Shown: in pieces, positions 4,461 through 64,000 of the stretch
Layout of the letters: each line of letters starts with the position of its first letter
How positions within the stretch are numbered: the stretch's first letter is position 1
DNA from: Oculina patagonica
Taxonomy: Eukaryota
Direction: 5' to 3'
DNA length: 64,000 nt
Assembly (NCBI RefSeq): GCF_052425735.1
Contig: NC_135758.1
Location: 28,334,001 to 28,398,000, forward strand
The notes under the pieces: model-generated
Told to the model about the DNA's origin: nothing
Seen by the model: the letters and a program-made list of their open reading frames with translations, nothing else
Databases searched by the model: none
Position numbers and translations under genes: made by a program

Positions 4461-7400
4461 AGCCAACTTCCCGTTGAAGGTGCTTCGTGTGATACTGGCA
4501 AAAAGGCGTCCAAAGGTGGTAACCTGTGTCCAGCGGTAGCAATGGTAGGGTATATACTTTTCTGTGCCTTCATTTGTCGGTCAGCACTCATCTCCATATT
4601 TCAAAATGACGTGACGTCATGCACGAATTCCGAAGCACACTTCGGGTAAGCACTTCGGAAAGTGAACATGGCGGACAATAATAGTCACAGTTTACACATG
4701 TACCGAGTCTGGTTTTAAAATCAGAGATCGCTTGCAACAAACATCTATTGTTGCATTGGAAAGGTGAAGGCAGGCTATTATTTTTTTTCTACTTCTCATA
4801 GTCATACAGGATTTCCTACGTGAGCTTAATGCCTGATTGACTCATTCGTGATCTAGTCGTTTTGAAATATGGAATAATGCTCCATACATCAAAATGACAT
4901 CTAAGAAGTTCATTATCTTTCCTAGCTAAAAAACAATTAGAGTGAGCAAAGAAGGCAATGAAATGGCCAAAAGAAATGTTAAACAAGAAACTCTAGTTAA
5001 AATCTGAGATCATTTTATTATTAAGCTTTCCAAGTTTATTCCAAGTCTTACCATCACTTAAGAAACTTAATACAAAATCAAAAATTTACTGATTTGGCTC
5101 AGTAAGGAGCTCGTTACTGAAAAAAGCTCAATGCATGTTGAGTAACACTTACAAAAACTCAAATTACTAAAATACCAAATCTGCATGCAAGGATAATGCA
5201 CCTATCAATGTTAAGCCTGAGGGGGGGGGGGGGTCGGGCAAGGGGTGGGGATTTTGACATTTTCTATAAAAAAATGTCAAATTCCCCACCCCCGGGACAA
5301 AATAATTGGTCAAAATCCCCATGAAAGGTGGTCAGATGTCCTTCAAACCTTCTATAAATGACCAAAATCCCTACCCTGGGGGCATCACGTACGATCAAAA
5401 TCCCCACCCTGGGGACAGCGCTCACGATCAAAATCCCGTGGTCAGCCCGACCCCCCCCCCCCCTCGGGCTTAACATTGATAGGTGCATAATTACTGTTGT
5501 AACTTTTATTAGCATTGACTGCATGGTTGTGGAATCATCCAGGATCATAGAAATATTATTGTGATATCTTATAAGTAAATACAAGGCTTGATTTTGGCAC
5601 CTCGGGGGGTTAAAGTGCAGCATATTAAATAGGACAAAGAACCTAGCTGTGGACATGATTATGTGCTTCCAGAAAATGTCTATACTCCCCCACAGAAGGG
5701 ATTGGAAAATTCCTGAGGGTGGGAGGGGTTTCAAAGGCTAAAACTTAAACAAAATGTACGAAGCTTTATTGGAATTTCCGGAAGGGTGGGAGGTCCTTAG
5801 GAAAAATCTCTTTTGTGGGGGAGGTATGGATAATTTGCGGAACAACACATTATGAAAAAGAAACTCAATGGGGGGTATGAAATGATATGAACATTGACTC
5901 GGTTCAGAACTAAAGGTGATAATTTGATTGACTCAAACCATAATTTGTACAAATTATACAAACTCTTTTTAGCATATTAATTGACAAAGCATTTCTTTCT
6001 TGTCCCTTTGTCAAGCTGCAGCTAACAGCCTTGGAAATGTTATGGAACTGCTGTTATGTTTTCGCACCTTTCAGTATTACATGTATTTTTCTAGACTGGA
6101 AAATCACCATTATGAAGGTGCTTTGCCTGGACATTTCACTAATGGTATTATCAGAGAGTAATTTTCTTCATCATTTTACTTCAATCAATCCTTAACCTTG
6201 ACATTCAGATAATGTAAATAACCATCAAAGAGAAATGTTCATACACCTAGCAGTAAATCGCTGGACTAAACTTTCATTAACATTTCATCTGAATGTCCAG
6301 GCAGGACAACATTGTCCTACAAGTTGATAGTTTTTTTATTTGGAGAAGGGATAGGGAAGATAAGGGAATACTCATGGATGTTTTATGGCTTTCTGACAAC
6401 AGCTGACTAGTGCAAATGGGAATTTCTTGCATTCTTGCCTCTGCATGCATCACAACTCCACTTCCTTTTGCTGTTAATTACCCAGTCAGGAATGTTCACA
6501 CAGGTTGGATGATACCATTGATTACACTGAGAACACTGTACATACTCATTGTTGTCATTTGGCATTCTACAAGCGCAGAAGATGGGCACGGTTGTTCTGT
6601 GGTTGCTGGGATGGTAAGGTACCCTCCGTGGTGCTCTTGGAAAAGGAACCATTTTTAGCGAATCAAGGCAGCTGACATAATGGGCACGCATTTTTTCTTG
6701 GTCATAGGATTGAGTCACTGGATCTATGCCATGGCACAAATCTGTTGCATATGCAAGTGCAAACAAGCCACAGTCACTCATGTTGGTTTGCTTTTGAACC
6801 TTCTCATTCGAGAATAAAATGGAATCCCCAGCATGCATGAGCATGCGGCAAGAATGGCGGATCGCAATAGGATTAACTCTTTGGAACAAGCTGTCATATA
6901 TCTTGATAGTTCCAGGCCTGCAAGGAATGGTACTGAGACATACCCAATGATTACCTCCTTGTTTTGAAGGGATGATCACTCTCCTGAAAAGCCAAGTTAA
7001 ATTTCAGGCTTTATAAAACAAGTGTAATAATTTTATTATTTTGATTGCATGAGACTGATAATATTGTCACTCATTTTACCTTTTGTGTTGCAAATTTGAC
7101 TTTTTCATTTTTCTTCCTGTCTGGACCATGCTGGCAATAAAATATTTTAGATCCAATTATCATAAAAGGAACTCCATCATAATGTAGTCTGTCACTTTTA
7201 AAAAAGATTTTCCTTGACTTACTGAATGGATCTGTGCAAAAATAAGATTTTTTTTTAATAACACAATGCTTTGTTGTTAACAATGCTAATGATAGTTGCT
7301 TTAATTTTTAAAATGGCAGGGGTGTCATGAGGGCCGGCTGCCGGCTAATTTCACTGGCTGAAAGAGGACATAAATGCCCTCCTCTGAGTATCTCATGTAT

Positions 7401-18044: not shown

Positions 18045-19294
18045 TTAACTTGCACACAGTCCTAAGCTAACCAATGCAAAGAGCCACAGTATGTAAGACG
18101 GCAACGAAGTTGATGATCTACTACAAGGATTCCCCAGATGCATGTTACACAAGTCGCTATCACAACAGAACTTGCAGTGGGTGGTTTTCTGGTATTTGCC
18201 AAGTGTCCACTTCATGGGGAAGAGTCTTTTACAATCTCTGTCACAGCCTCTCACCACTTGGGCTGTTGTTCCATTAGGGAAGACCATCCTATACAGAGAG
18301 CACTGGTTAAACCAACGGGTGCACTTTTGAGGCCTTGTTCCTTGCATAGTGTCCGTGCTACAAGGTCCTTCCTTGGAGTTACAATAGTGACACTTGATAA
18401 GACCTACAAGATATCGAATTTGAAAGAAAAAAGCCTATTTCAATCTTAAGGATTAGTCAGGGGGCAGATGGCTCAATGGTCCCGACGCTTTACTCAGGTT
18501 TCTGTAGCATGAATGATATGCTATATTCTATCGCAGGTTAGTAGAAACTCAGTCACTTGTTCTACTGGAATTCCGCGAATCTGATTGGTTCTCCCATTGT
18601 TTTCCATTCGCTAATACAACGCGATCGTGCGCGCGTTGCTCTTTAAAGGGACAAGTATTCTTAAATTTTGGCTGGAAAGTACATAAAATTTTGAGTTATG
18701 GACTGCAGTCCTTCCGAGTTGCTACTAAAACAATTGGACTACTTGCCCTCGTTTTCTATGAGCGTTAGTCAACTCGCTGCGCCCTTGTTGACTATTCGCT
18801 CAAAGGAAACTCGGGCTCGTAGCCTAATTGTTAATTTTGTTGGGCTGCTCGAACAGCTCCTTGGTACTTCAATTATACTCTTGTGTGGAGAGACAGGGCA
18901 CCATGTTAATTATGTGTTTTGCCAAAAAAAAAAACACAACATGACACCGACCAGGATTAGATCCGATCCAGATCAGAGAGTCCAGCGCACTAGCTAACGA
19001 ATTCGAAAGGCCACCGCGTAAACGATATCCCATTTGAACTTGAAAATTGAACAGCAGTGGTATACCCCATCACAGACTCAAAGTTTAAAACGGCAGCCGA
19101 CCATATTATGTTACTATGGAGAAACATTGTGAGACGTACCCAACTGTATTGACTTCAAAGGAAACCTTCAATGGGCGATTGCAACAATTCTCGTATTCAA
19201 TTTAGAAATTAGATGTAGATTTACCTTTTATCACTGGGACATCCGTGAACAGGATGATGCATAAGACGACGCTACGAAAATTTGAACTAGGCAT
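18045..19294 (-). CDS. GPI-anchored Ly6/uPAR (three-finger) domain protein, copy A
   Basis: Signal-peptide exon 19294-19225 (MPSSNFRSVVLCIILFTDVPVIKG) spliced in phase 1 to exon 18403-18045 (LIKCHYC...CCDSDLCN plus hydrophobic C-terminus). Probable upstream non-coding exon with donor near 20223. Confidence 0.85.
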
Positions 19295-21684: not shown

Positions 21685-22801
21685 TTACAATAAGTAACGT
21701 AAAACAACCGCTAGGACACCCAGAAGTGAAATGGTAAAAGTCTCGTATCCCAAGTGTCCCGCCTTGGATGGATTACAAGGGTCCATAGTAAAGTTGTTAC
21801 AAAGATCCTGCGAACAGCAAAGAACGCAGTGTTTGGTGGTAGCACCTTCTCTGCCTGTTGTGTATGTAGTGTTGAATTTCAGGCATTCAGTGGCGCAGTA
21901 TCGTACGTATTGATGGTTGGACGTGTTGCCGTCAGGGGACGGTGGTTCTTTCTTGTAAACCGCGCAGTGAGACTCGCCACTGCGGCACTTTCTCGTGCTC
22001 ACTCCATCTAGTGACTGTGGAATGCAACTTTTGTCGTCATTTGAGTTGCAGTCATAGCAATTCGCAGCACCTGAAAGACAGCCATAATGTAAATGTACAA
22101 ATAATATAAATTATAGTGTGTAATGTACTTTTTTACTTTAGCTTGTATTCAGCCAGTCGTTTCTTACCGAGGACAGGGCCCAGTTGTCCAAAGGTTTGAT
22201 AACGCTATTCACCGGATATATCATTATCCATTATTCAATGGACATTAAAGTGCTGACAAAACAAGCTACGCTATCTATTGGATAGTGATTTACCCGGAGG
22301 TGGATAGCGTTATTCAACCTTTGAACAACCGGGACCGGGTTTAAAGATACCACTGAGGTTGCGACGGTCCAAGATCGTCCGCTCCCTAAACCGGCCTCCG
22401 AGGAAGCATAAGATTGATGGCTAGTTACTTTCGATAATATGAAGTACAACAGATAATTACCAAAAAGAAATCCCGGATCAAATGAACCAATCAGAACTCA
22501 AGGAAAAACATGTCACGTGGGCGGGAAAACGCGCGTAGGGTAAGTCACGAGTGATACGTTGCCAGATCTTGATTGGCTAAATAAGAACACTGAACATCTT
22601 GCCCAAAGACGTTTAGCAATGTTACAAATTTGATAAGTAAGAGCTCAGCAAACACAAACCGGCCCTCGCAATTTGACAGAACTTGGACAGTCCATTGATG
22701 TCGAGTCAGTTGTTATAATTACCTTCACTTGTCAAATAAAAGCAGGCTGCCGCCAACACCGCGTAAAATGTGACGCGCGCATAGACAGTGACTTCAGTCA
22801 T
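21685..22801 (-). CDS. GPI-anchored Ly6/uPAR (three-finger) domain protein, copy B
   Basis: Signal exon 22801-22723 (MTEVTVYARVTFYAVLAAACFYLTSEG) spliced in phase 1 to exon 22070-21685 (NCYDC...CCSQDLCN plus hydrophobic C-terminus). Same structure as copy A. Confidence 0.87.
22176..22337. mobile_element. Short MITE in the Ly6 copy B intron
   Basis: Imperfect TIR GGCCCAGTTGTCCAAAGG..GATAACGCTAT / ATAGCGTTAT..CCTTTGAACAACCGGG. Confidence 0.6.
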
Positions 22802-27134: not shown

Positions 27135-41750
<14,616 letters not shown>

Positions 41751-47551: not shown

Positions 47552-50500
47552 AAATCCGGAAAAGCTGTAAAATATGGAGTGCCAATCTCCCTACGCTTAT
47601 CGCTTGTTGGTTGCGTCTAACATTGCATGTCCTTGTTCTCTGGGATATAAGAGGTCAGTTTATTTGTGTGTTGTTTTTCTTGTCCTTTATCACAACAGTC
47701 TGTTAATAGACCTTGCATTTGGGCCATAAGTTCGATTCGTTTTATTCTGGATAAGAAGTTTTGTTTAGTACCACTTCTGGGGTTTTGCAACTGATAAGCG
47801 AATCCGAGGTTTACATGTAACAAAATGTTATCTTAGCTCTGTGTTTTGAGCATAGTTAGGCAAGTAACCTAACTTCATGGAGGACAACTGCTGTATTTCC
47901 CCAGGGAACATTTTACCCTCATAGTGCAGAGTAGTTGAGTGGACCTCGGTTAACTTGGCGAGATGCGTTATTTTGAGTGTTAAAAAATAAAGGATATGAC
48001 CTGTAGCTACAGTTAATTTAGCTGCCGGTACGAAAATTGTGCGCCTGCCGCAAGGGCTCCACAATCGTTCAGTCATTTTCGTGCATGATATATTTTGGAT
48101 CGAATTTACACCACCTGAAAGATTCAAAATCGCAGCTGATTCACCTTTCATTCTTTGAAACACATTTAGCTAAACATGGATGGGTTCTATTCACTTGAAG
48201 TTGTTCATTACGGTGAAATGGAAATCGCAGCTTATTTGAAACCTTTGTAGAATTAAATTCTTTATGGCAACTTATGTTATTATTAAGACAAGGAAAATCT
48301 TAAGTACAGTATTAAACCTAAAATAAATCGGTGAAATTATGAGAAAGTTGTAGGAATGACTGCAATCGCTTGCAATCTGTTCAGAAAGAGGAAAAGTTTA
48401 AAATAATTACATTCATAAATGTGCTGAATCACTCTATGTGGAGTTATGTTTTGGTGTCGGTATTGTTTATTCGTGTTCGTAAGTACGTCATAACAGCCCG
48501 CTGGATAAAGTGAAAAATTTACATGTTATATCCGAATCCATTATTTTACGTGTTGTCAGCCGTGATGAAGAAAACTGAAGAATAGAGACTTGTGACCTGC
48601 TCAAGTGTTGTATATCGAAAAGCTTTTGCCTTTTTATTCGTTTTCTTTCTTGCGTGTAGTTTTTTCGTGTGGTTTAAAACACCGCTCAGTGACGTAAAGC
48701 AACAGGACTTAGTTATAGACGAAAATATAACGGCTGGTTTTGCAGACTGGTCACGCACAGATTGGTACGCAGCATTCAGATGAGCAATTTCGTTTTTAGT
48801 AAATAATAAAGAGGGTAACTTTTAAGCTCCAGTCGGTGATAAATAATGAAGACGATTTTTTCAACAATGACACTGAGCCCCCGACGGGAATCGAACCCAT
48901 GGCGTCCCAGATACCGTTTGGGCGCTCTAACCATGCAACTGAGCTACGAGAGACTCGTGGTGAAATGGGCCATTTACTAGGTTGATATGTGACACGTGTT
49001 CTGCATACTGCTAGGATCAGCTATGTCGAAATCATCAAGTGTGCTAGTAAATAAAAGTAAAGATGGTATTTTTTTAAGCTCGGTGATTGTAATGAAGATG
49101 AATTTTTCAACAATGACACGAGCATGGAACAAAGAAAAATTCTGAGTCCCCGACGGGAATCGAACCCATGGCCTTCCATATACCGGTTGCAAGTCAGATC
49201 AGTCTAAAAATAGGAACTAAATGCGATATTCAATTTAGAACAGCATTTAATGGCTCTATCGATATTTATAGTCTTCGCCAATTCCGCTTGGATACAACAA
49301 CAACAATAACGGCCGCGACATTCACCATGGCGAAGTGCAAAGATATTGGACCGAGAAACTTCGGAGATACTTGAACTTAATATTCTGATGTCATTTGCTC
49401 AATCGGCAAGCTTATTGATACGCAAGTTATGACTTTCAGTGTAAAACCCTCAGTGACGCTGAATCAATTGCGTGCTAGATTACTGATTTTGGTCCGAATA
49501 TGAGTGTCAAGAGTGCAAATTGACTCTCTACCCTCACTTCCTAGGAACAAGACATATGTCAATTGACGTGTTAAAACAGATACTTTACGTATATAGAAAT
49601 AACGGATGTATTACTAATATCAGTATAGACCGCAAAGCCTACAGTCTAATACGGGCACTTGCGGTAAACACGAACAGGAAAAAAGAAACAATGGCACAGA
49701 ACAACACTTGAACGCAAAGAATACTGGACCTGCTTTTGCATTTGAAATGACGCAACGTACTTTTTCGATCACGATTCGCCTTCGGGCGATTCCTGTTTAG
49801 AAGTAAACAAAATTTTCAGTCTTAAACGTTTGTTTATTTTATTATTTCGTTGAGCTGCTAGAAGAAACGACGATCACGGAGCCAGGCTAACCATACACGT
49901 GGGAAATTTAAGACACCAACTAATTAGCATTTGCAAACTGTCGCTAGCAAAGTGCTTATTCCTGGCGTATGACAACTGCGCATTGAAGTTTCTGTATTTA
50001 TAATAGCTTAATAAAGAGCATGCACGGTTCATTTTTAGATTTGTAAATGCCTTCTTTCAATTCTTTCTTCTTGATACCTGGTTTTGAAAAAATGTACGGA
50101 CTGACTGACTGATCATGACTTACTTTCAGAATGATAGGACTGACTGTCTTATTGCTTGTCTGTCTGACCGACTGCCGGACTACCTTTCCGTCTGACTAGT
50201 CCCGACTATTATACGACTGAATGACTGACTGACTGACTGACTGTCTGTCTGTCTGTCTGACTGACAAAGAGACTGAGAAACGGACTGACTGACTGTCTGA
50301 CTGACTGATCGATGCCTGACAGACTGAGAGACTGACTAACCGACTAACTGACTGACTGACTGACAGACAGACTCGCTAATCTGTTGGCTGAATGTATCCT
50401 GTTACGCTCTCAGGTATTCTTTGCTGTAAGAATGACCCCAGTCTCTACTTCATCGACGACCATAGGATCAAATGTGCTGCCGTTGATTCTTTGGATCAAT

Positions 50501-53500
50501 CAAACCCCGCCTTTCAGACGGTCGTCTCCAACATCGCTGAAGGAACATCGATTGATATGGACGTGCGGAACAGGATGGTTTACTGGAGTGACACCCATTC
50601 GTGGACTATAAACAGAATGAACTTGACTTCTGGAGAAATTAAAGTCATCATCAGAGATAACATTGGAGAGGTTTACTCCATGGCTGTTGAATGGGAAAGC
50701 GGCTTAATCTATTGGACGGATTTTATCTTCGAGAGAATAGAAGTAGCGAATGTAAATGGAAGTTCTCGACGGACCCTAGTAACACAAAACGTAAGGTCGC
50801 CAATTGGAATTGCAGTAGATCCAAGAAATGGGTAAGTGACACGGCTTGTACCTTGGTTGAATGCTTCTAACATAAGTCTTAGTATTTGAGTGTATTTATC
50901 GACAGCCGTGTTTGTAAGCTTTACTGCACTCTTTTTAAATTAAGCCACTAAAGAATTTTTGTAGCGATATGCAAAAGCAGTTTTCTATTACACTTTGCAT
51001 GATTGATTATAGATTCTTAATCCTAGTGAATTAATTTTAAGTATGAATATCATCTTAGAGTTTTAAGTAGTTTTAAATTATTATTGTATTTATTTCATTG
51101 TCTTTGAAAAGCCTCTAGNNNNNNNNNNNNNNNNNNNNNNNNNNNNNNNNNNNNNNNNNNNNNNNNNNNNNNNNNNNNNNNNNNNNNNNNNNNNNNNNNN
51201 NNNNNNNNNNNNNNNNNNNNNNNNNNNNNNNNNNNNNNNNNNNNNNNNNNNNNNNNNNNNNNNNNNNNNNNNNNNNNNNNNNNNNNNNNNNNNNNNNNNN
51301 NNNNNNNNNNNNNNNNNNNNNNNNNNNNNNNNNNNNNNNNNNNNNNNNNNNNNNNNNNNNNNNNNNNNNNNNNNNGAGAATATTAGGCGAAACGAATGAA
51401 ACCTTTCTGGGATACGGTATTCAACATACTTGGCTACAGTTTAATCAACTTTATGGAGAATGCTGAGTAAGGGGAAAGGTAGAGACTAATTTGGATTGAT
51501 TTGATTGGTTTGTTGATTGGGTGGTGCGAGTTTTTTTTTAACCAATCATAATGCGTGGTATTAGACGCAAAGCCAAAGCAATTCTTGTCTCTTTCGTCAC
51601 TCAATCAAAAACGCTTCTATAAATAGCAATCACAACTGGAATTTAACCAGCCGACTTAAAAAGGCGATGCATAATAGGAACTTGCTCTTAACCCGTTCAG
51701 TTTCTTTGTTCAAAATAATCATTATTTCTCTTTAGGGATTTTCATATATTTCTTTTGATGTTAGTCCTGAGAATATGTCAGCGTATCAAGACATGAATTT
51801 TCGTCACTTGGTTCCTTAATTTCCATCTGATGTTTTCAAAGCAAAGAGAAAGCTGTTCTTAATCACTCTTGAAATCTGAATTAAGTTTTAAGGCTAAAAT
51901 CGCTAGTAGTGAAATAATTTGCTATTTAGTTAGTTGGATATTTCAATTTTTCTCATCATTCCATAGTTCACGTTCATTTATTTCCCTACAGATACATGGT
52001 TTGGTCAGACCACGATTACGCTGCACCGAGGATAATGCGTGCAGATTTGACGGGTGAAAATCCTCGCGTGTTGTCCAGACATTTCCATGGCTTGCCTTTT
52101 TATGTCATCATCAATTACAGCGAGAACCGAGTCTACTGGACTGACATCCACTTCTTATACACTTTCATCGGATCAGTTGGTCTAGATGGGAAGTCATTTA
52201 GAGGAATAAGATACATTCACCCCGTTTACTTCCCATTTGATCTGGCAATCTTTAAAAATGACTTCTACTGGGCTGACGAGAATTTACAAGGAGTTTCGTG
52301 GTTCGATTTCAAGAATTCATCTTCTAATGTGGCCACTCTGCGAAGGTTGTCTCAAAACTACTTGCTCGGAGTAGTGATATCGGATCCATCAACACAGCCA
52401 ATGGGTATGTGGTAATGAATGCCTTTATTTAATACATTATTATTTATAGCTGTGGAAACCGCGGTGGTCTTATAGTTAGTGCGAGGTGTGCCTGGCCTGG
52501 CAGTTGTGTTATGTTCCTAGACAAGATGCTTTATCATCACAGTACCTCACTACATCTAGGAGCATAAGTGGGCTCGGCGAAATGCTGAGGCCACAAAAAT
52601 AAAGGTGCTTGGAAGATAATACCAATCCGTTCAGGGGGAGTGGCAATTCCTCCTAAACTCCTCAAGTTACAGAAATTAGATTTAAGCCTCGGCCTCTAAA
52701 GCCTCTAGGGAGGAAACAGGCTAGGGCGGAAATCGAAAGAGCTTTACTTTTATATGATTGTCGTTTGTATACTTTGTCTTTTGTTTAGATTAAAATGTAA
52801 ATATTAATAAATTCTTGTCTCTCTCTGCAGCTGCAGGACAACAGCCATGCGCAGTGAATAATGGCAACTGCAGCGATCTATGTCTGCTAACTCCAGGAAG
52901 AGGACGAAAGTGCGCATGCCCTCAAGGCGTCACCTTGAGTGCAGATGGAATGACTTGTGCTAATGGTAAGCACATAGCTTTAGGTTATACCAGTGGTTAT
53001 AAGAAAAATAAAATCATTGTAGATTACAATGAAGCTTGTCTCAAAGGGGGGGGGGGGGGGGGGGTCCCTGGAGCCCCGGAGCCCAGAAATTTCTGCTTTG
53101 GAGCCCGGAGCCCGGTCATTTTACTGACTGGAGCCCTGATTCTTTTTTGGCTGTGGAACCCAGAGCCCAAAGAAATTTTTCGCGGAACCCAGAGCCCAGC
53201 GTTTTAAAATTTGATCATTCCCGATCCCAGATGGCATTTTTTCTTTCCAAAGATCAACGCTACGTGAAAGATGTCAAGAACTTGAGACCTTGAGTTTCAG
53301 TCACATATAGCAAAGAAATCTGATCCGCTGCATGACCTAAGTGGGGACTTTTTAATAGTTGGAGACACGATAACCGTCGATAACCGGCTTCTTGGGTTTA
53401 AAAAACTGGTCGGAATTGCGGCCTTTTTTATTTGCGGACTTGATTAAGCGTTACAAAATAGCTTTTATATCTTAAGCTTGTAGACCATAGTGGAGCCCGG

Positions 53501-53925
53501 AGCCCGAAAGCAGATGATATGGAGCCCTGGAGCCCTAACATTTTTGTCTTGGAGCCCTGGAGCCTTGCAATTTTTAGCCCGGAGCCCTGGAGCCCTAAAC
53601 CCCTTTGAGACCCTGATAGCTGTGCGCAAGTGACATTTGAAAAATCATGCTTCGTGTTTTAACAGTGCGCTGTGCCATTTTATGAAGACAAGTTTTTTAC
53701 TACTTGGATTTAATAGTTCCCTTTTTTAACCCTTAATATGCTGAAATTATTCCTAAAAACGCGTTTTTTTAACCGTTAATCGATTTTCTTGGCTCTACGG
53801 TCCAAAAGTTCTCTAAATTTGCTAAAAATGCACTTTCTGAAAATGAAGGAAGATTTTGATGAAATTTCCATGTAAAACTGTACAATGTCCTGTACAATAT
53901 TTTACTTTGGCGCATGCGCATAAGC

Positions 53926-53965
<40 letters not shown>

Positions 53966-56900
53966 AACCGTTCCGATTTTTTTCCTTGCTCCTTTCCTTT
54001 TCGTTTTTCTCTGCTTTCTTATTCTCTCTATCTTTCACTCTGTGCTCCCCTTCTACTGGCCTGAAAAGTTTTGATCTGAATCAATGGAAAACCCTGGAAA
54101 GGAGATCATGATCAAGTACGGGTATTTTGGCCTGTTTTAGCACCAATTTTACACCAAAAACTGATCGCGTTTTTTTCGATTAGCTCTGTCGGAATGCAGT
54201 CAATATTGAAGATGGACAGTCCTGTGGAAAGATCTATCCAAGCTCTATAAGATGCAAATTACAAAAATCTGCTGACGTGTAAATTGGTGACGTCATAAGT
54301 GGCAGAATGGCCATTCCTCCAAATCCCGGAATAATCCGTGCTTAGCATGATAAGGGTTAAGTAATACACGCCTCTTGGAAATTTAGGACAATACTAAAAG
54401 TGGCTAAAGGTACTTTGGCGATCATATAATTCTAAAATCGTTTCTATTTATTTAGAATCTGCACCTGCAACTCAGCCACCACCACTTCCAGGTCAGTATG
54501 CTATGTAATATACTTTTTCTCACTTACTACCTTTTTTACGAGTTTTTATAACACTGTTGTTGTTTGTTTACGTTCGAAAACTATTACCGGTATTTGAGGT
54601 TTTATTCAATTTGAAAGAAATCAGAAAAATGACTTAAAATATTGTGACATGGCTCCTTTAATGGAAAGTGGTTTTACAAAGCAAGTCCTAAAACTATAAA
54701 TGCTATAAATACAAAGGAATTGCATCTAAATATTTAGCCTGCGAACAGGCTCCCGAGTGGGGCCGCGAGGAGGAGAGGGACGAGCGAAGCGAGAGAAGAG
54801 CGGGGCTGAGGTGGAGTGGGGGGGTGGGAGCCGTGGACAGCGAACCGCCGACAGAACCAGAAAAGACGAGGCAGACCGATGACAACTGAGCGTGAAAGAA
54901 GAGCGCAACAAAAGTTTGGAAGCTTGGTGACATTGATTTCCGATCCCGACGCCGACGAATAGCCCGATGCCGAAGATCCTGACATGTGCTCGGAGTATTG
55001 TTGGGTTTGCGAGGGAATAGTCGGGCGAGGCGTGTAGTTGGGGAGGAGATGAAGGCGGTACACACAGGAGAGAAAGTCGGAAAGGGAGCGAAGAAAAACC
55101 CAGGTGTCCCAGCTTTCTTGAGCTAATCACATTGTGAAGCACAAGTCAGGGGACCACTGGCCGCCTGAGGGAACAGTTCGACGACAAATCCGCCCGTTGA
55201 AAATACCCAAGTGCGCGGGATGTTGAGAGCGAGGAGAAGACGGCAATTACCCGAAGATGTACAGGAAAAAGGGACGGAGGGGGAATCAAACAAAGTCACA
55301 GGCTCCCCCCAGGCCCCGCTCTCCGCGCGCCCGGCCGCCGCGCGGAAACCCCACTCGGGAGCCTGTTCGCAGGCTACTAAATATTAAGAATATTATTTAC
55401 TGCTATACTTTTTTGACATTTCAGCAATCGAAGTTCGTCTTGTCGGCTCCTTATTGGTCAACAGAGGTCGTGTTGAAATACGTTACAACGGACAGTGGGG
55501 AACAATATGTGATGACTACTGGGGCATAGACGAGGCACACGTCATCTGCCGCATGCTAAACTATTCAGGTGCAGAGTTTGCACCTCGTAATGCGTTTTAT
55601 GGCCGTGGAAAAAGATCCATGCCTATTCTATTAGACAACGTAAAGTGCCGAGGTGACGAGTCGACAATTGCCGCTTGTAGGCACGGTGGATGGGGTCAGA
55701 ATGACTGCGACCATTCAGAAGACGCTAGTGTAGTCTGTTGGACCGAGTCTGCATCTTCTGGTCAAGGTAATGAGCTCATATCGATTAAATGTCTTTGAAA
55801 ATATAACAATTTAGGATTTTAACCATGTACGTTCATATTCTTGAAGATTATGGCGTTGCTTTATATGTTTATCGACACAGTTAGTAACTCAACCACCTAT
55901 TATAAAAGACGAAAAGCGAAAGAAAAAAATGTCTAGCATAGGGTTTTTTTCACATTCACGGCTTAGCTCTGGCTATGATCTAGATAGATAGTTAGATAGA
56001 TAGTTTATTAATACAACTTCGCAACCTAAAAGGTTGAATTATGTCATATTTACAAATTTATAAAGCTATAAAAACTAACGATAAAATGTAAAAATATTTA
56101 AAGAACTATACAAGAGTGATTAAAATCCAAACTTAAGTACATTAGAGACAATAAAACTATTTCTAAATCTATTAGTCTTAAAAACAGGGTTAAACTGGCG
56201 TGACTTTCTGAGGTTATAACTACTAAGATTCCGTGGGGGCAGTAAATTCCTCAGCCTACTGTCATTGTTCTCTAAAATGTTGTTAAACAATTTGTCCGTC
56301 AGGGCTTGTCTTCGACCTGACAGAGTGACTAGACTTGCCTAAACAATGTAGGACGTTTTCCCAACACTATCAAAAATTAACAAATTTTAATGGTTCTATC
56401 ATAAATTTCTATTTAACTTTGCAGAACCAACTCTGGCTCCTGGACCACACCCAGGTATGTGTTTGATTTAAAATTCCCAAATGGTAATTCAATATGAGCA
56501 GGAGTAAATATGAATATGAGTAAAACTCCGCTGTGTATACTATTAAATGCTGCATAAAAAAAATCACAAGCAAACGGAAATATCACCTCCTGATTGGTTT
56601 ATATTGTCCACGTGGGCAATTGGTTGCTTGATTATGCTTTATACAGCCCCCTGTACTACTTTCGTCAGTGGTAATGATTCTTTAAGCTTATTTAGCTCTG
56701 TAACCGGAAAATAAAAATAAAAAAAACGTACCAACTACTCCTGTCCAGAAGGTTACAACAAGCATGCTCAATCAATTTAAATCCAAACAGAAACCAGTCT
56801 TGACTTGATTGGTTACAAGGTGTCTCGTGTTCCGATTGGCTCATTACGTTGCAATGAACGTAGCTGCGATTGGCCAGATGTGATTATTTTGGATTTTGTT

Positions 56901-59900
56901 AATATACGACCGTGACTGAAAAAAACCGTTCTTTTTCGGTAGAAGAAACTTGTGACTACTCACTTAGACCTGTAAAAAACTGTAAACGCTAGCCATTTAA
57001 GCCAATTTGTCGTCTCATCTAGAACTAAAAGTGAGATTGCACGGTGGAGACTCGCATTACAAGGGAGGAGTGGAAATTTACCTGAACGGGACCTGGGGAA
57101 CAATATGCGATGACTCATGGGGGATTGAGGAAGCTAACGTCATATGCCGAATGCTGAATTTCACCGAGGGAGCTCTTAGTACGCAGTGCTGCGGATTTTA
57201 TAACAACTACGGTGTTGCGGAAAAGATTTGGCTGGACGATGTCCACTGTGTTGGTGATGAACAGAGCATCGCAGAGTGTCGCCACAGTGGTTGGGGAAGA
57301 CACAACTGCCGACATAGTGAAGATGTGGGAGTTGTTTGCAAGCATACACCAATATCAACTCCAGGTATATTTTTTCATCTCTTCGCATCGCTTCATTTTT
57401 TCAATTAAATTTTCTTTCTAGTCTCAGAGTTCCTCTGTTTAAATGAAGTAATTACATACCTAACTTTACTGTTTAATATACCCTTTCATTAGTGGTTTCA
57501 TTTTTCTGAATGACTTCGATAAATTCTTCTATTTTAGATCATTTTGAAATTGTATTGTTTCTGCGGGAAAACTAGTTTACCTCAACGAGATACCCTTCAA
57601 GTTCATTTTAACGTTCAGTCCTAAAAAAGCAAGAAGTAATGCTTTCTCTGTCACATATCATAGAAAATTAATCCTACATCCTAAGATGAACATGTATGCT
57701 GCTCGATACTAAAACACACGAAATTTGAGGGATGTCGATTAGCATCTCTTGAGAGACGTTACTGCCAAGTACATTGGATTAAAGCCCCTACGTAGGTTGT
57801 CTTCGTGTTAAATCTTGGGTAATTGACTGAGGGGTGTGTAGTGTCTTAAAAGACAGACATTTCTAAACCTTCTAAAACAATATATGTTAGTATGTATCTA
57901 ATTCGTTTAAGTGAAAAAAGCGATATATTTTTTTTTCTTTGCGATTTTTTATTTTTCAGGCCAAATTGTGAGACTGGCAGACGGAGCTAGAGAAAGTGAA
58001 GGACGTGTGGAAATATTCAATGATGGCGAGTGGGGGACGGTTTGCGATGATAACTGGGACATCAACGATGCAAATGTCGTTTGCAAAATGCTTAATTATT
58101 CCAGAGCATTACGAGCTCCACGACAAGCATTCTTCGGCCGAGGGAATGGCAAAATCTGGTTTGGTAACGTCAATTGTCGCGGTAATGAAAACTCTATTCT
58201 GCAGTGTGGATTCAAGGGTTGGAATATTGACCATTGTGACCATCATGAAGATGCTTCTGTTGTCTGTGAAAGGGAAGCAGCACATTTAGGTAAGCCAATA
58301 CGGGAGAGCTTCATAGGCTTCATACAAATTTAACACTTAACAATTCGCCGCTTGTTATCAACGTATGTTTTATCGGATTCTCTAGTTTGTCCTTCATATC
58401 AATTGTTCAGTTAATGTCGGATATTTTTTCGCGATAATATTTATGTACCAATGCCAGAGTTCGGATCGGCCTTTGATTGAGAAAAAAAGAAATTTTAAAA
58501 GGATGTTGAATAGGCTAGTTTCGTGTCTTGGAATAGCTAAAAATGAAGCTATTTTAGGACGGGATATGCACCAATCTGAACTGAGAACATAAACCAGTGA
58601 AATATTAACAGCTAAGTTTGCCGTGCTAAAAAGCGAAACTTATACAATAACGACAAAAAATTCCTTTGTTCTCATTTCAGAATCAAACAGTTTCATTTTG
58701 GCCTGTGGGTCCGGACGAAGTCTTATCTACCACATCCCACTTGACCCCAGTCTACCGGAGAAGGGAGTACCTCTTGCATTACAGACGAACAAGCCACTGG
58801 CAATAACATTTCACAGCAAGGAAAAAATGGCATACTGGACAGAACAATCTGGGTCCATCATTCGCGCTTATCTAAATGGTTCTAGGGAGGTTATAGCAAT
58901 GGGCTTCACTCGTCCATCAGGAATTGCAATAGACTATGTCGGCCAAAATCTGTACTTCGCTGACCAAAATGGCATCAAAGTATCAAGGCTTAATGGTTCA
59001 TATCAGGTGAACCTAATAAACTTAACGTCTTGCCATGGAATTGCTTTGGACAGCGACGCAGGGTAAGACGTCCATGGAATCCTGTTTATTATTTTTTTTA
59101 GCAAAACAGTCAGACACTGTTAATGTCCTTCAATGCAAAGTGCTTGCTGCTCGCAAGACAAATTCGATAACTGTTCGTGCTTGCAAACAAACAAACAAAC
59201 AAGCAGACAGACAAACAAACAAACAAACAAACACAAAAACAAACGTAGTGTTCGCATGCTCGCAAATACCTTTCGTTACTCTTTTGCGCATAAGCGCTAG
59301 CTGTCCCGAACGTGTTACTTTTTTTTTTAAAAACACGAAAACAAGATCTAGACCTTATAACTTCAATGCGGTGTGTTCAATAACAACCGGTGTTCGGTGC
59401 ACCCCTATTTCCCATGTCAAACCATTAGAGCTCCTTTTGAATTCATTGTTTTTTTTTCAGTTATACTTACTTTACTTTGACTGGTGCCAATCCACAAATA
59501 CTGCGTGCAGACATGGATGGTAGAAATGTCGTTGTCTTGCTGAATGTGTCCTCCATCAGGGGAACTACACTTGACATAGCATTGGACAAAGTTAACAAAC
59601 GTCTTTACTATTCCGACGAAAGCAATAACTTGATCAAGTATCTCGATCTTGCCACTTTTATGTCTCATTCTGTGCTGCTTGGCAACCCTCGTAGACCGGT
59701 CGGTCTCACCCTGTTCAAAGGAACTCTTTACTGGACCGGCGTTGGAGCAGCGGAGATGTTCAGTGGAGCTGTATACAAAGCTGATGCCAACAATGTAAAT
59801 GGTAGCATCGTTAAGGAGGTTGTAGACCTCATTTCGTACCCCAGAGGATTATACGCTCATGACTCTACAGCCAGCGAGTCACCAGGTAAATTTTTTAATT

Positions 59901-62900
59901 GCAAAGCAATGGATACCCCATAACTATTCAGATGTAATTGTATCGGCGGGCCCCATGTAATGTTAAGTTTATAAAAAAGTACCAATCTCAAGTCCTAAAG
60001 GTCAGTTTGATTAATTTCGATTAAACGAATTCGTTTAGTTTTCCAGTCTTCAGTCATGTCTCCACTGTTGAATTCGGTAAAGGATATATTTTTGTCTTTG
60101 TTTTTCTCCTTCCACCGTCACAAATATTTTGAAATAAAACTACGCTCATCCGATTTTTGGCACTTCGATTCTCTAAATATTTTAAAACGTTTTTGTCTAT
60201 TTTATAACTAATGCATTTGATGCTCACTCTATTGAAATGACAATAACGTTTTCACGTTCAAGACATTTGGTGAAATGTTTTGTTTAACTTTTCTTTTCTT
60301 TTTTTTCAGCCTACAACCATTCGTGTGCAAAAGACAATGGCGGTTGTTCCCATCTTTGTTTAATAAACCCTACAGGCTATAGTTGCGTGTGCCCAGGCGG
60401 GCCGTGCCAGACAACATTCACTTCATCGATCTCCACTAAGAGCAGTGCAAACATGTTTACCGTGACGTCTTCCACTACTTCAACGCACAATGCTCTCAGC
60501 TCCAAAGAAACTCACACCTCGGTTTCAGTTTCAAGCTCGTCTTCGACACCCTCGTCATCCGTGTTCTCTTATCTCGCCTCAGCATCTTCCTCCACACCCC
60601 ACGTAAGCATGGCCATTTCCTCTAGTTTCTCAAAAGTCAATTCTCCTACCACGCACCTGGCTCCAACCAAGACGTCCTTCGTCAATTCCGTTTCTACCGC
60701 TACTCCTCCTATTACCGATTACTGCTCCACGCATGAACCTTGCGAGAACGGCGGCCTTTGCCAAGTTGATGGGCTCAGCTACAAATGCGTGTGCAGTGAA
60801 TATTTTATTGGACAGCACTGTTCGATAGACATAAGTAAGTTTTTGTTTTATTCAATGAATCTTTAAATGGTGCATTAGATTTTTCTTCTTACATTGACAG
60901 ACACTTTGTTATTTTAAACTGTATTTTCAGCTTATATACTTTTTATCCCTTTTAAAACTAAAGCAAGTCACTAACTGTTCGCCGTCTATTTTTATTTATT
61001 TAATTATTTGTTTATTTTTTCTTCAGGTGGCGGAGCAGTTGTAATTGTAATAAACATACCAGGAAATCAGGTACTGTTACAGTGGTACACTGACTTGTGG
61101 GTTTAATAAGATGAAGCAGGGGACGTTAAAGAACCCACAGGCTTATTGCAAAGAGTAGTGCACGAAGTTCGGAGTTGTGGTCTGGTCTTTGCCTGAAGCA
61201 ATGTCACGGTTGGAATGGGAATGCTCGGAGACATTGGCTGTTTAAGCTACTATATTAAATCGGATGGTAAACAAAGTATTCAGTTCAGTTCAGTTCAGCT
61301 TTCTTTTAGCCTATCACTTCTAACAAAATGAGCGCACTTCAAGTGAAACACCTATGTACCAAGTACCAATACTCTTCACTTTAAGTTGCAAAAAGTTTTA
61401 TTGAGAAAGAGTCATTTAAAATTGTGTAGAAAGCGTAATGTAGTCAAACGAGAGTCAAATTTTCTCAGTAAGATTTTATGTGGGTGTTGACGAATACGCG
61501 ACTGACTCGCACTAAAATTGACTTTTACTCTAATAATATTTGCATTTCTTTTGTTCCAGTTAAACAAAACAGAACTGATACATATCATTACCAAAATCCT
61601 GAACAATCTCTGCGAAGGTGCAAGCGACAGATGTCCACTACCACTCTCAGAGTAAGAACTCTATACAGTAGCAGCTAGCTTATGATCCTTCAAGACAGGC
61701 CCCCATTTTTCAATTTCCATGTCATTTACAGGGTCGAGACAGGCTCCCTTTTTTAATTTCCATGTCGAGACAGGCTCCCTTTTTCAATTTCCATGTCATT
61801 TACAGGGTCGAGACAGGCTCCCTTTATCAATTTCAATGTTATTTACAGGGTCGAGACAGGCTCCCTTTGTCAATTTCCATGTTATTTTCAGAGTCGAGAC
61901 AGGCTCCCTTTTTTCAATTTCCATGTTATTAACAGGGTCTAGGCAGGCTCCCTTTTTCAATGTCCATGTTATTTACAGAGTCCGTGGTCTTTTGTTTGAG
62001 AGATTTACAGGATGTTTTATGTTTTTTACATTTGTTTTCAAATATGTACATGTTTTTTACAGTTTTGAGAAGAACATGTTAAAGGGAAAAAACTATGTAA
62101 ATCATCCTTAACGGTGTCTTTACATGTTATTTACATACTATTTAAATTCTAAACTTTCCAGTGTTGCTGCAAGCGGAGGAAATAAAAGACGGCTTCACAC
62201 AGGCTATCCCTTTAAAGCCTCATTTTTATTCATATTTCCCGGTAGAGAAGGGTGGTATCATTCTTTGTTTTCGGTAATAAGCACCATTGAAATAATGTTA
62301 TTGTTCCTGCTTAATCTCAAATAGCCGGAGTTGTTGTTCTGTGCAAAACATTTAAATTCAAAGCTTAATCAAAACTTGATTAATTTCCTATCTGACCTCT
62401 AAATAAACTTTTTCTCATTTTCATAGGGGCACAAGGAGAAGACGAGAGATAAGTAAGGTTACATTCAAACCTGAAGACGTTATAGTACTGGATCCCAAAC
62501 AAATTGACGAAAACCTTCAAGTAGAGCTGGCTGTTGTTAAAATTGTGCCAGGCGGGTCGTTTGTTGTTATCTCTAGTAAAAATCTTACTCAAATACTGCT
62601 CGAGTCGGCTGTAGAAATCGGCCAGAGACTTGGAGGAAGTGTAGTAAGCATAAAGCCAAGATTCGCTAGACCAACAACTCAAGCACCGCCAGTCGTAAAA
62701 ACATCAGTACCTGGACCAAGTCGTACACAGCCTGAAACTGGAAAAACGACTACAGTAACGCAAACACCGCCAGTAGTAAACACAGCAGTACCTGGTCCAA
62801 CTACTCAGGCACCAGTAGGTCCGGGTCAAGCAGCTGCCAGCAAGGGTGGAAACAATGGTGGGGTCATTGGTGGTGTGGTCGTGGCTGTGCTTGTGGTTAT

Positions 62901-64000
62901 CATCCTGGTTATAGCGTTGGCGGTCTGGTATTTCAGGTAATAACAGTTGAAGTCTTTGGTCGTCCTTCTTTTACTTGAAGTTTAGACAGTTTGGTTTCTG
63001 ATGACAGTCAACTCTCGTTTAAGACTGACACCATTGGGACCGGCCGCATTGTCTGTCTTAAAACGCTTCCACTGCTAGGCGTAAAGGCATACGTGTAATA
63101 TAGCCGGCATAAGCGTAAAGTAAAAGTGAGAACAGAGGCAACATCAGCATTGTTAACTGCAGGCACAAGCGTAAAATAATGAAAGGACCATATTCTTCTT
63201 TATAGTTGTCACTACTACAAATTTTTTTTTTTTTCAACTTGCGATATAAGCATTTTCAAAAATAAGCGCATGAAGAACAGTTTTGTTCCCTTGTGCTTAT
63301 ACGTTTGCGTTATACCTCATGCCGCTGTGATTCGTATAGTACAGTGACCTCGACAAAAGGATCCTCGACGAGATTTCTTATGGAGGTTGTTTATAGGGTT
63401 GTTTTTTTTTTTTTTTTTTTTTCAAAATTATCTCGTCGCCAATGTAGAACCGCCAAAAGTTCAATAAAAGACAAATCGTATTTTAATCGACTTGTCCGCC
63501 ACGGCACATTTCACAGTACACTACTTTTGTTTGTAACTAGAATGCATTACCACCAGCCTAATATATTCGGAAAACAATTAGCTGACATCGATTGGCTCTT
63601 ACGACATTCCTTCAACAATTCACAGAAGCTCGACACTACAGTGAGGAGAGCATATGAAAAATGATAGCATTCGTTGTTCCCATCTATGCATCGTTTACTC
63701 TTTGTTCATACTTTTTGTCGTGCGCATGGTTACATCACAAAAAATAACTGTCTAGGAAACTCATCCTCGAGTTGCATCTAATGACAAGAAAAATTCCATT
63801 AGATCGAATATTAAAAATGGGATGATATGGTCCACCTTGTCATAGGTGAAATGAAATAGGGAGTAGCCATCAATACTAGAAAAAATCTTAGACATGTCTT
63901 GGTTTAGTTTACTTTAAAACAAATTGCCTAACACCTCTGTTAGTTTTGACTCGCACAGCCTTTTTATGTTTGAACAGGGTAAAAATTCCCGGTCTTCCAT
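47552..64000 (+). CDS. LRP-like receptor 2: propeller-EGF, 3xSRCR, propeller-EGF, S/T stalk, EGF, SEA-like, TM (3' end outside window, start codon unresolved)
   Basis: Exons 47552-47653 (probable signal), 50414-50831, 51992-52404, 52831-52965, 54456-54491, 55425-55766, 56425-56454, 57023-57364, 57960-58289, 58681-59062, 59461-59885, 60310-60834, 61027-61070, 61560-61651, 62427-62936, probable 63978-. SRCR motifs [50 protein letters not shown]. Confidence 0.85.
48820..49190 (-). repeat. Tandem tRNA-derived repeat (~1.5 units)
   Basis: CCCGACGGGAATCGAACCCATGGC occurs twice (B-box GGTTCGATTCCC on the minus strand), each preceded by TTTTTCAACAATGACAC. Confidence 0.7.
50097..50375. repeat. Degenerate (ACTG)n microsatellite
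   Basis: Directly visible. Confidence 0.85.
51119..51375. other. Assembly gap (N run), intronic
   Basis: N characters. Confidence 1.
52450..52710 (+). mobile_element. Degenerate copy of the tRNA-derived SINE
   Basis: GCGGTGGTCTTATAGTTAGTGCG..GACAAGATGCTTTA..CAGGGGGAGT, co-linear with 9339-9638. Confidence 0.55.
53038..53615. mobile_element. MITE with GGAGCCC subterminal repeats
   Basis: GTCTCAAAGGGG / CCCCTTTGAGAC inverted ends and many GGAGCCC(T/G) direct repeats. Confidence 0.6.
53730..54356. mobile_element. piggyBac-type non-autonomous element
   Basis: TTAA|CCCTTA ... TAAGGG|TTAA. Confidence 0.75.
54735..55376. mobile_element. GC-rich non-autonomous DNA transposon, TAG..CTA termini with 9 bp TSD (AcademH-like)
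   Basis: Perfect 28 bp TIR TAGCCTGCGAACAGGCTCCCGAGTGGGG. Exact TSD CTAAATATT at 54726-54734 and 55377-55385. Confidence 0.85.
55980..56300 (-). mobile_element. 5'-truncated CR1/L2-type LINE tail
   Basis: Minus-strand [35 protein letters not shown] (resembles a LINE ORF2 C-terminus), then AATAAA and a (TCTA)n tail. Confidence 0.6.
61692..61980. repeat. ~43 bp minisatellite (about 7 units), intronic
   Basis: Repeats of TTTCAATTTCCATGTCATTTACAGGGTCGAGACAGGCTCCCT. Confidence 0.85.

Follow-up and report, generated by a model that had tools for sequence, protein, structure and literature searches.

A spliced YWTD-SRCR hybrid receptor in Oculina patagonica and its modular relatives in corals and, probably, sea anemones

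The 64,000-nucleotide stretch analysed here (the window) is part of a chromosome-scale contig in the 529-Mb genome of Oculina patagonica (NC_135758.1, positions 28,334,001-28,398,000) and carries two receptor genes, neighbours in tandem on the plus strand. The second of these, receptor 2, is a genuine single-transcript hybrid in which YWTD propellers, as found in the low-density lipoprotein (LDL) receptor superfamily, are combined with three cysteine-rich domains of the scavenger receptor type (SRCR), without LDL-A (LA) repeats. An earlier note on this DNA had explained the hybrid by a swap between the two tandem paralogs, in which SRCR exons took the place of a propeller; per-propeller trees, approximately unbiased (AU) tests and relatives in which the SRCR cassette occurs together with three propellers contradict such a swap. 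We consider it likely instead that receptor 2 descends from an SRCR-bearing three-propeller form that later lost its second EGF and third propeller, and we find that the YWTD-SRCR receptors of corals, and probably of sea anemones, are a family rather than a single odd gene.

Receptor 2, which extends from 50.4 to 64 kb of the window and about 0.5 kb beyond it, is expressed and probably encodes a mosaic protein of type I membrane topology. Its model has 15 GT-AG exons, all on the plus strand and with splice sites that read AG/GT throughout, and a single open reading frame (ORF) of 1515 amino acids, which is a minimum length. The encoded protein would begin with a propeller (P1), an EGF domain, a Pro-rich linker, SRCR1, a further linker, SRCR2 and SRCR3, and continue with a second propeller (P2), a truncated EGF, a Ser/Thr-rich stalk and another EGF. 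Its C-terminal part would consist of a juxtamembrane alpha/beta domain with an RRRR site, a transmembrane (TM) helix and a tail with FxNPxY and NPxY motifs.

P1 is encoded by two exons (50414-50831 and 51992-52404) that were placed by Pfam, by splice sites and frame and by membership of the P1 clade described below; a run of Ns (51119-51375) lies inside its intron. The EGF1 exon follows at 52831-52965 (135 nt, phase 1-1; Pfam FXa_inhibition, E 7e-14), just where the earlier note had put it, and it is joined to the next exons in spliced contigs. Both PF00058 and PF14670 score above the gathering cut-off on the P1 and EGF exons. The SRCR exons lie at 55425-55766 (SRCR1, 342 nt, E 4e-30), 57023-57364 (SRCR2, 342 nt, E 3e-31) and 57960-58289 (SRCR3, 330 nt, E 3e-33); their lengths and their common phase 1-1 had been predicted exactly, as splice sites and frame attest, and all three are present in the spliced contigs, SRCR2 being further backed by PDB alignments. 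The three domains score 104-115 bits (n=3) against a Pfam gathering cut-off of 26.1. Two RNA-verified micro-exons, both phase 1-1, had been missed: one of 36 nt (54456-54491; contigs X1 and X2, GT..AG) encodes a 12-residue Pro-rich linker between EGF1 and SRCR1, and one of 30 nt (56425-56454; contigs X1, X2 and X8) encodes a 10-residue Pro-rich linker between SRCR1 and SRCR2. The second propeller, of P2 type, occupies exons 58681-59062 and 59461-59885, separated by a phase-2 intron after DSDAG. It is divergent and was recognised by a family hidden Markov model (HMM) and by its position in the P2 clade, and the junction from SRCR3 to 58681 is present in four runs.

The next exon (60310..60834) encodes the truncated EGF, the Ser/Thr-rich stalk and the second EGF, as judged from Pfam and frame and from the same order on a Tara scaffold. 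A 44-nt exon (61027-61070) then opens the juxtamembrane region with 14 beta-strand-like residues. From conservation and frame, we also place a predicted helix-like exon of 92 nt at 61560-61651, which the earlier note lacked; the frame between the 44-nt exon and the TM exon needs it, and the downstream gene and one other species have kept it as well. The TM exon (62427..62936) encodes the RRRR dibasic (furin-type) site, an alpha/beta region, a Thr/Pro stalk and the TM helix (...AVWYFR), directly after which comes a phase-2 intron. The tail exon starts at 63978, continues past the window end at 64000 and encodes AFENPGYE (FxNPxY) and SNPIYSEIG (NPxY); its stop codon falls 503 nt past that end (64503 in extended coordinates).

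That the SRCR exons and the propeller belong to the same transcript is demonstrated by public sequencing runs. Fifteen runs from five studies cover about one-fifth of a 5.9-kb stretch of the gene, which equals its exon share, and four of them were mapped. The EGF exon, SRCR1, SRCR2, SRCR3 and a propeller exon follow one another in contig X1 record 1 (3318 nt) and likewise in contig X2 record 5 (5209 nt); in these contigs, which come from two studies, six consecutive GT..AG introns between the EGF exon and the P2 exon have been removed, and runs X8 and X4 back part of the joints. The spliced product is open across the 360 codons contributed by the SRCR cassette and its linkers, and the length of the 5209-nt contig fits the 15-exon model, leaving about 0.7 kb of 3' untranslated region. 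Given these joints, it is extremely unlikely that the SRCR exons form a separate nested gene and that the joints stem from chimeric assembly or from occasional read-through. The contigs are indeed assemblies rather than single molecules and the library type was guessed, but the same joints recur across studies, each of them in at least two and at most four runs, every joint is GT..AG, and one frame runs through the cassette codons. Moreover, the exon order is kept in four other assemblies, and an independent RefSeq model from Acropora digitifera links SRCR and LDLR-B domains.

As a separate observation, three stretches within the receptor 2 introns (53000-54800, 55200-55400 and 55980-56400) showed very deep coverage with many short, loose-ended contigs in all four mapped runs; dispersed repeats or pieces of transposons, and not exons, are the most likely source.

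The architecture differs from that of LRP1/2/4/5/6, as had been proposed. An HMM built from 120 LA repeats found no LDL-A repeat on either strand of 154 kb, recovering 3/3 repeats in its positive control, an LRP5/6-like protein, and there was no Pfam PF00057 match on the scanned exons; the earlier note, too, had found none in either receptor gene. Pfam also returned Ldl_recept_b, FXa_inhibition/EGF and SRCR on the exons expected to hold them, and no CUB or ZP domain on any exon ORF scanned. With the LDL-receptor superfamily (LDLR, LRP4, LRP5/6) receptor 2 shares YWTD six-bladed propellers each with an FXa_inhibition-type EGF after it, a Ser/Thr stalk of the O-glycosylation type, a single TM segment, split-propeller exons and an FxNPxY tail, and the type I topology with an NPxY tail that marks this superfamily is also that of our model (TM helix, AFENPGYE, SNPIYSEIG). 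Unlike those receptors, it lacks LDL-A repeats and the PPPSP motif (the tail contains no PPP[ST]P), it carries a three-SRCR cassette between EGF1 and P2, and its juxtamembrane alpha/beta domain has a dibasic site. LRP5/6 possesses four propeller-EGF pairs, three LA repeats and PPPSP, whereas receptor 2 has two propellers and none of the rest.

Seen from the SRCR superfamily (DMBT1/SALSA, CD163, MARCO), receptor 2 has tandem SRCR domains with acidic cation-site residues, and the best PDB matches of these domains are CD163, CD5L and DMBT1. Unlike members of that superfamily, however, it has no CUB, ZP, collagen or trypsin partner domains, so that the SRCR, CUB and ZP combination of DMBT1/SALSA is not found in it; its SRCR trio stands between YWTD propellers, each SRCR domain is encoded by one phase 1-1 exon, and SRCR1 and SRCR3 have six cysteines while SRCR2 has an extra vicinal pair. 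The SRCR2 domain, with eight cysteines including the vicinal CC (STQCCGFY; 57180-57200), departs from the classical group B pattern, and ST[HQ]CCG[WF]Y is present in the SRCR2 of all family members (modules B and C, loci L015 and L018).

The best matches of SRCR3 and of the second propeller within the same genome lie 40-70 kb downstream on the same strand, and we mapped 90 kb of this region using HMMs built from the local exons. Between 35 and 75 kb downstream, the map contains three tandem modules (A, B and C), each arranged as propeller-EGF-SRCRx3-propeller-EGF-propeller-EGF. The array (C1:28432600-28475600, plus strand, loci L004-L008) closes with one juxtamembrane/TM exon and an NPxY-bearing tail, and the map shows no TM or tail exon between modules. 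Modules A and B each close with an EGF exon whose GTAAGT donor is in phase 1, the first exon of the module that follows begins in the same phase, and the 44-nt exon is present in this downstream gene too. Modules A-C are thus probably one giant gene of more than 4000 amino acids, with 9 propellers and 9 SRCR domains.

Maximum-likelihood trees of 32 and 34 whole propellers resolved three clades of family propellers, P1 (support 98-100), P2 (93-94/90) and P3 (97-100/99-100). The first propeller of receptor 2 groups with those of sp2, sp4 and modules B and C (100/99), and its second propeller, together with a copy from the Tara scaffold, is sister to the P2 propellers of sp2, B and C (99/97). Neighbourhood on one strand, a common exon structure, a difference at exactly the middle position and the phase 1-1 symmetry of the SRCR exons all speak for the idea that, after a tandem duplication, exon shuffling put the three-exon cassette in place of the middle propeller and EGF of receptor 2. 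Nevertheless, the nearest kin of receptor 2 hold both the cassette and three propellers, its second propeller is of P2 and not of P3 type, and AU tests rejected the sisterhood of receptors 1 and 2 at every propeller tested: for P1 (p = 0.002), for the second propeller of receptor 2 with receptor 1 P2 (1.5e-8) and with receptor 1 P3 (6e-64). The groups tested follow the hypothesis of the earlier note, although the tests were run after the tree had been seen. The cassette, too, is orthologous across paralogs and species. Taken together, these points make the swap very improbable. Exon shuffling remains a fair account of how the phase-1 symmetric SRCR exons first came into such a gene; it does not account for an exchange between these two paralogs.

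The SRCR tree is short and poorly resolved, and it nonetheless contains position-specific groups (S1 92/86; S2 with B, C and sp2 98/93). Judged by these sequence comparisons, SRCR1, SRCR2 and SRCR3 are positional orthologues across paralogs and species, so that the cassette would have been inherited by receptor 2, and the parsimonious reading places the three-SRCR block before the split of receptor 2 from the three-propeller modules. The descent from a three-propeller form follows from the same comparison: given a P2-type second propeller and three-propeller SRCR-bearing kin, it is EGF2 and P3 that receptor 2 would have lost.

We further found the super-module at loci in at least four other ENA assemblies, which were reached via exon-sized relatives in protein libraries. 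One locus (L015) holds a complete module with TM and tail, another (L018) one module with the next directly after it, and a third (L029) a module junction whose phase is identical to that of the Oculina locus; in two more (L030 and L031), a module begins after 10 kb of empty sequence. The Tara scaffold (L010) carries an orthologue of the second propeller of receptor 2 (63-68% identity), behind which come a truncated EGF and a Ser/Thr stalk as in receptor 2, an arrangement indicating that the two-propeller form is an established lineage and not an assembly accident. We are fairly confident that the family is one of corals, with sea anemones as probable further members, and that its unit is a phase-1-symmetric super-module, P1-EGF-SRCRx3-P2-EGF-P3-EGF. 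Its forms vary by whole modules, receptor 1 having three propellers and no SRCR, a minus-strand neighbour one propeller, and the giant gene three super-modules; the family is a clean natural case of evolution by the shuffling of super-modules rather than of single domains.

A search of a representative library using the P2b exon gave exon-sized fragments, multi-propeller LRPs and bacterial YWTD proteins, with no SRCR in any of 150 matches and no full-length family protein, and a search using the P1a exon of module C for spliced fragments spanning two modules gave genomic exon ORFs only. Outside the family, the first propeller of a Nematostella protein annotated as 'LRP6 isoform X2' (P0024) is sister to the family P1 clade in our trees (100/99). 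This protein has four YWTD-EGF pairs together with HYR, Sushi, ephrin-receptor-like and ShK domains; like receptor 2 it is a cnidarian YWTD-EGF mosaic without LDL-A, and unlike it, it has no SRCR and a different C-terminal half. When its first propeller was used for a homologue search, LRP4, LRP2 and LRP1 dominated, and none of 266 matches had SRCR or the TM exon or tail of the family.

In the literature, the combination of YWTD and SRCR is known from supplementary tables, one figure and one remark, and as a family it is barely described. The A. digitifera protein XP_015757898.1 (Adi017, 3613 amino acids) is listed with nine SRCR domains plus LDLR-B and FXa domains in a Table S6 (PMC10855680); its SRCRx3 / LDLR-B / FXa unit recurs three times with the periodicity of the giant gene, a comparison made by domain table only. 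In Exaiptasia, AIPGENE595, an 890-residue protein named DMBT1, has one YWTD, one EGF and two SRCR domains (PMC6626399). Both are automatic and seemingly partial models (Adi017 has no TM or signal row) whose likeness to the family is judged by domain listing. The combination has also been remarked on in the sponge Stylissa carteri (PMC4772301). No YWTD-SRCR architecture appears in the parts of the text and tables consulted of a survey of cnidarian scavenger receptors (PMC5119243), and our literature search on SRCR with Ldl_recept_b or YWTD found no description of such a receptor family. By the earlier note, an already described widespread family would have refuted its reading; the family is widespread among the assemblies reached, yet undescribed. 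Automatic names such as 'DMBT1' or 'LRP4/6-like' hide the family, the former reflecting only the SRCR part.

The tail motifs and the acidic residues of the SRCR domains suggest that receptor 2 is an endocytic scavenger receptor. The pattern [AS]F[EN]NPG[YF] is present in all four tails compared (receptor 1, receptor 2, the giant gene and another species); NPxY followed by EIG or DIG is present in receptor 2, the giant gene and the other species, and DPLYAEIG in receptor 1. The juxtamembrane exon opens with a dibasic site, RRRR in receptor 2, in every one of the 13 sequences, out of 16 aligned, that cover this position. The cation sites of SRCR8 in SALSA consist of D1019, D1020 and E1086 and of D1058, D1059 and N1081, and mutating the ligand-bridging cation positions of SALSA/DMBT1 abolishes binding (PMC7043408). 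All three receptor 2 SRCR domains contain CDDxW and HxED when their translations are compared with these positions. The second site is represented by LDD and N in SRCR2, by LDN and D in SRCR1 and in degenerate form (FGN, H) in SRCR3, and SRCR2 keeps all six acidic or amide positions. The SRCR trio might therewith capture polyanionic or microbial ligands in a Ca2+-dependent manner, with the propeller-EGF pairs acting as spacers or additional binding faces. NPxY recruits clathrin adaptors in LDLR, and the NPxY motifs of receptor 2 may couple it to such adaptors for uptake. By analogy with LRP1 or Notch, the conserved dibasic site near the membrane may serve as a cleavage site for a proprotein convertase.

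The juxtamembrane domain in which this site lies, labelled SEA-like in the earlier note, matched no Pfam family at threshold. Sub-threshold matches to KIAA1549 were obtained for 7 of 16 homologues, its weak look-alikes in the Atlas (0.84) include clusters named SEA, and the AlphaFold model of the TM/juxtamembrane exon alone (predicted local distance difference test score 55) was too poor for a fold search.

With the same anatomy and origin, the receptors could have another role, as signalling co-receptors or as adhesion or matrix receptors that use their propellers as LRP4/5/6 do. Propellers of the LRP4/5/6 type bind protein ligands directly, and the nearest propeller matches outside the family include LRP4 homologues and an LRP5/6-like protein; in addition, AIPGENE595 is mildly up in the adhesive pedal disc of Exaiptasia (PMC6626399). 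However, the tails lack PPPSP-type motifs, their conserved elements are FxNPxY and NPxY, and the SRCR cation sites are kept, and we regard such a role as rather unlikely. Our own tentative proposal, put forward as a possibility more than as an expectation, is that these are undescribed endocytic pattern-recognition receptors of corals and anemones, in which the SRCR trio replaces the LA repeats on an LDL-receptor chassis and a phase-1-symmetric super-module of about 1300 amino acids has been gained, lost and tandemly duplicated in frame, from one-propeller genes to a giant with nine propellers and nine SRCR domains, and which may serve the uptake or sorting of microbes or symbionts. Corals depend on innate means of recognising and taking up microbes and algal symbionts, a role for which SRCR proteins and LDL-receptor relatives are recurrent candidates, and an SRCR cassette on an NPxY-bearing, LDLR-like endocytic frame provides concrete receptors to test.

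Several points weigh against this account of the gene, its family and its function. In no member of the family did a signal-peptide exon come to light. The two small exons that open the juxtamembrane region (61027-61070 and 61560-61651) and the junction to the tail belong to the predicted part of the model, outside the RNA-supported joints, and the label of the runs ('RNA?') is a guess, their RNA origin resting on the intron-free joints. The giant gene is taken as a single transcript on the strength of its phases, of modules that have no TM exon between them and of one RefSeq model. The taxonomic breadth of the family is known only roughly, and its function is read from motifs alone. P2 and P3 of receptor 1 sit at the base of the P2+P3 clade in a position that is not settled, and the pairing of its P1 with that of module A is weak (90/79); receptor 1 may either have lost the cassette or have branched off before its insertion.

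The ectodomain of receptor 1 (28783..36139, plus strand) consists of three YWTD propellers, each split over two exons and each with an EGF exon after it, as mapped by Pfam and family HMMs. P1 (Pfam Ldl_recept_b) lies at 28783-30287 with its FXa_inhibition-type EGF at 30891-31019, P2 at 31810-33358 with its EGF at 33675-33821, and P3 at 34038-35486 with its EGF at 36014-36139, all three pairs being assigned by Pfam. The Pfam and family HMM map of these exons contains no SRCR domain, and a run of Ns (33413-33574) falls within an intron. A Ser/Pro-rich, mucin-like stalk follows (36140..37774), recognised from ORF listing and composition and sharing its ORF with EGF3; it accounts for a spike at 36-38 kb in GC content (0.50) and GC skew (-0.57). 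No stop interrupts any of the three plus-strand frames across this tract of about 1.6 kb (SPSPSP...). The juxtamembrane region (38075..39331) starts with a 44-nt exon (38075-38118) and continues in the TM exon, an ORF at 38822-39331 with a dibasic site, an alpha/beta region and the TM, whose acceptor was not placed. After the TM comes a phase-2 intron, and the cytoplasmic tail exon or exons (40383..41461) encode FNNPGY (FxNPxY) and DPLYAEIG. The features by which the two genes had been likened to each other are all real: split-propeller exons with a phase-2 intron after D-x-x-x-G, EGF exons, a small exon of 44 nt and, directly behind the TM, a phase-2 intron. A tblastx comparison of their upstream regions gave microsatellites only and no common 5' exon.

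The minus-strand family member lies beyond the window, between receptor 2 and the giant gene (L001:5767 to L002:1340). Its single propeller is of P1 type and forms the sister branch (99/94) to the rest of the P1 propellers; the gene further has one EGF and a juxtamembrane/TM exon. The interval from receptor 2 to the giant gene also holds an intronless ORF of a rhodopsin-family G protein-coupled receptor on the minus strand (L002:6993-8015; 7tm_1, E 4e-31).

Elsewhere in the window, two Cys-rich minus-strand ORFs (18048-18434 and 21688-22110) show the three-finger pattern of Ly6/uPAR proteins (CCxxDLCN), with Pfam QVR and UPAR_LY6 just under the cut-off, and a third such ORF lies past the cluster (146067-146471 in extended coordinates, minus strand); a 'snake toxin-like' domain is also listed for AIPGENE595 (PMC6626399). 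Finally, a minus-strand ORF at 6410-7003 combines a Ulp1 protease C-terminal domain with a PHD finger and probably belongs to a gene that is SUMO-protease-like or of transposon origin.

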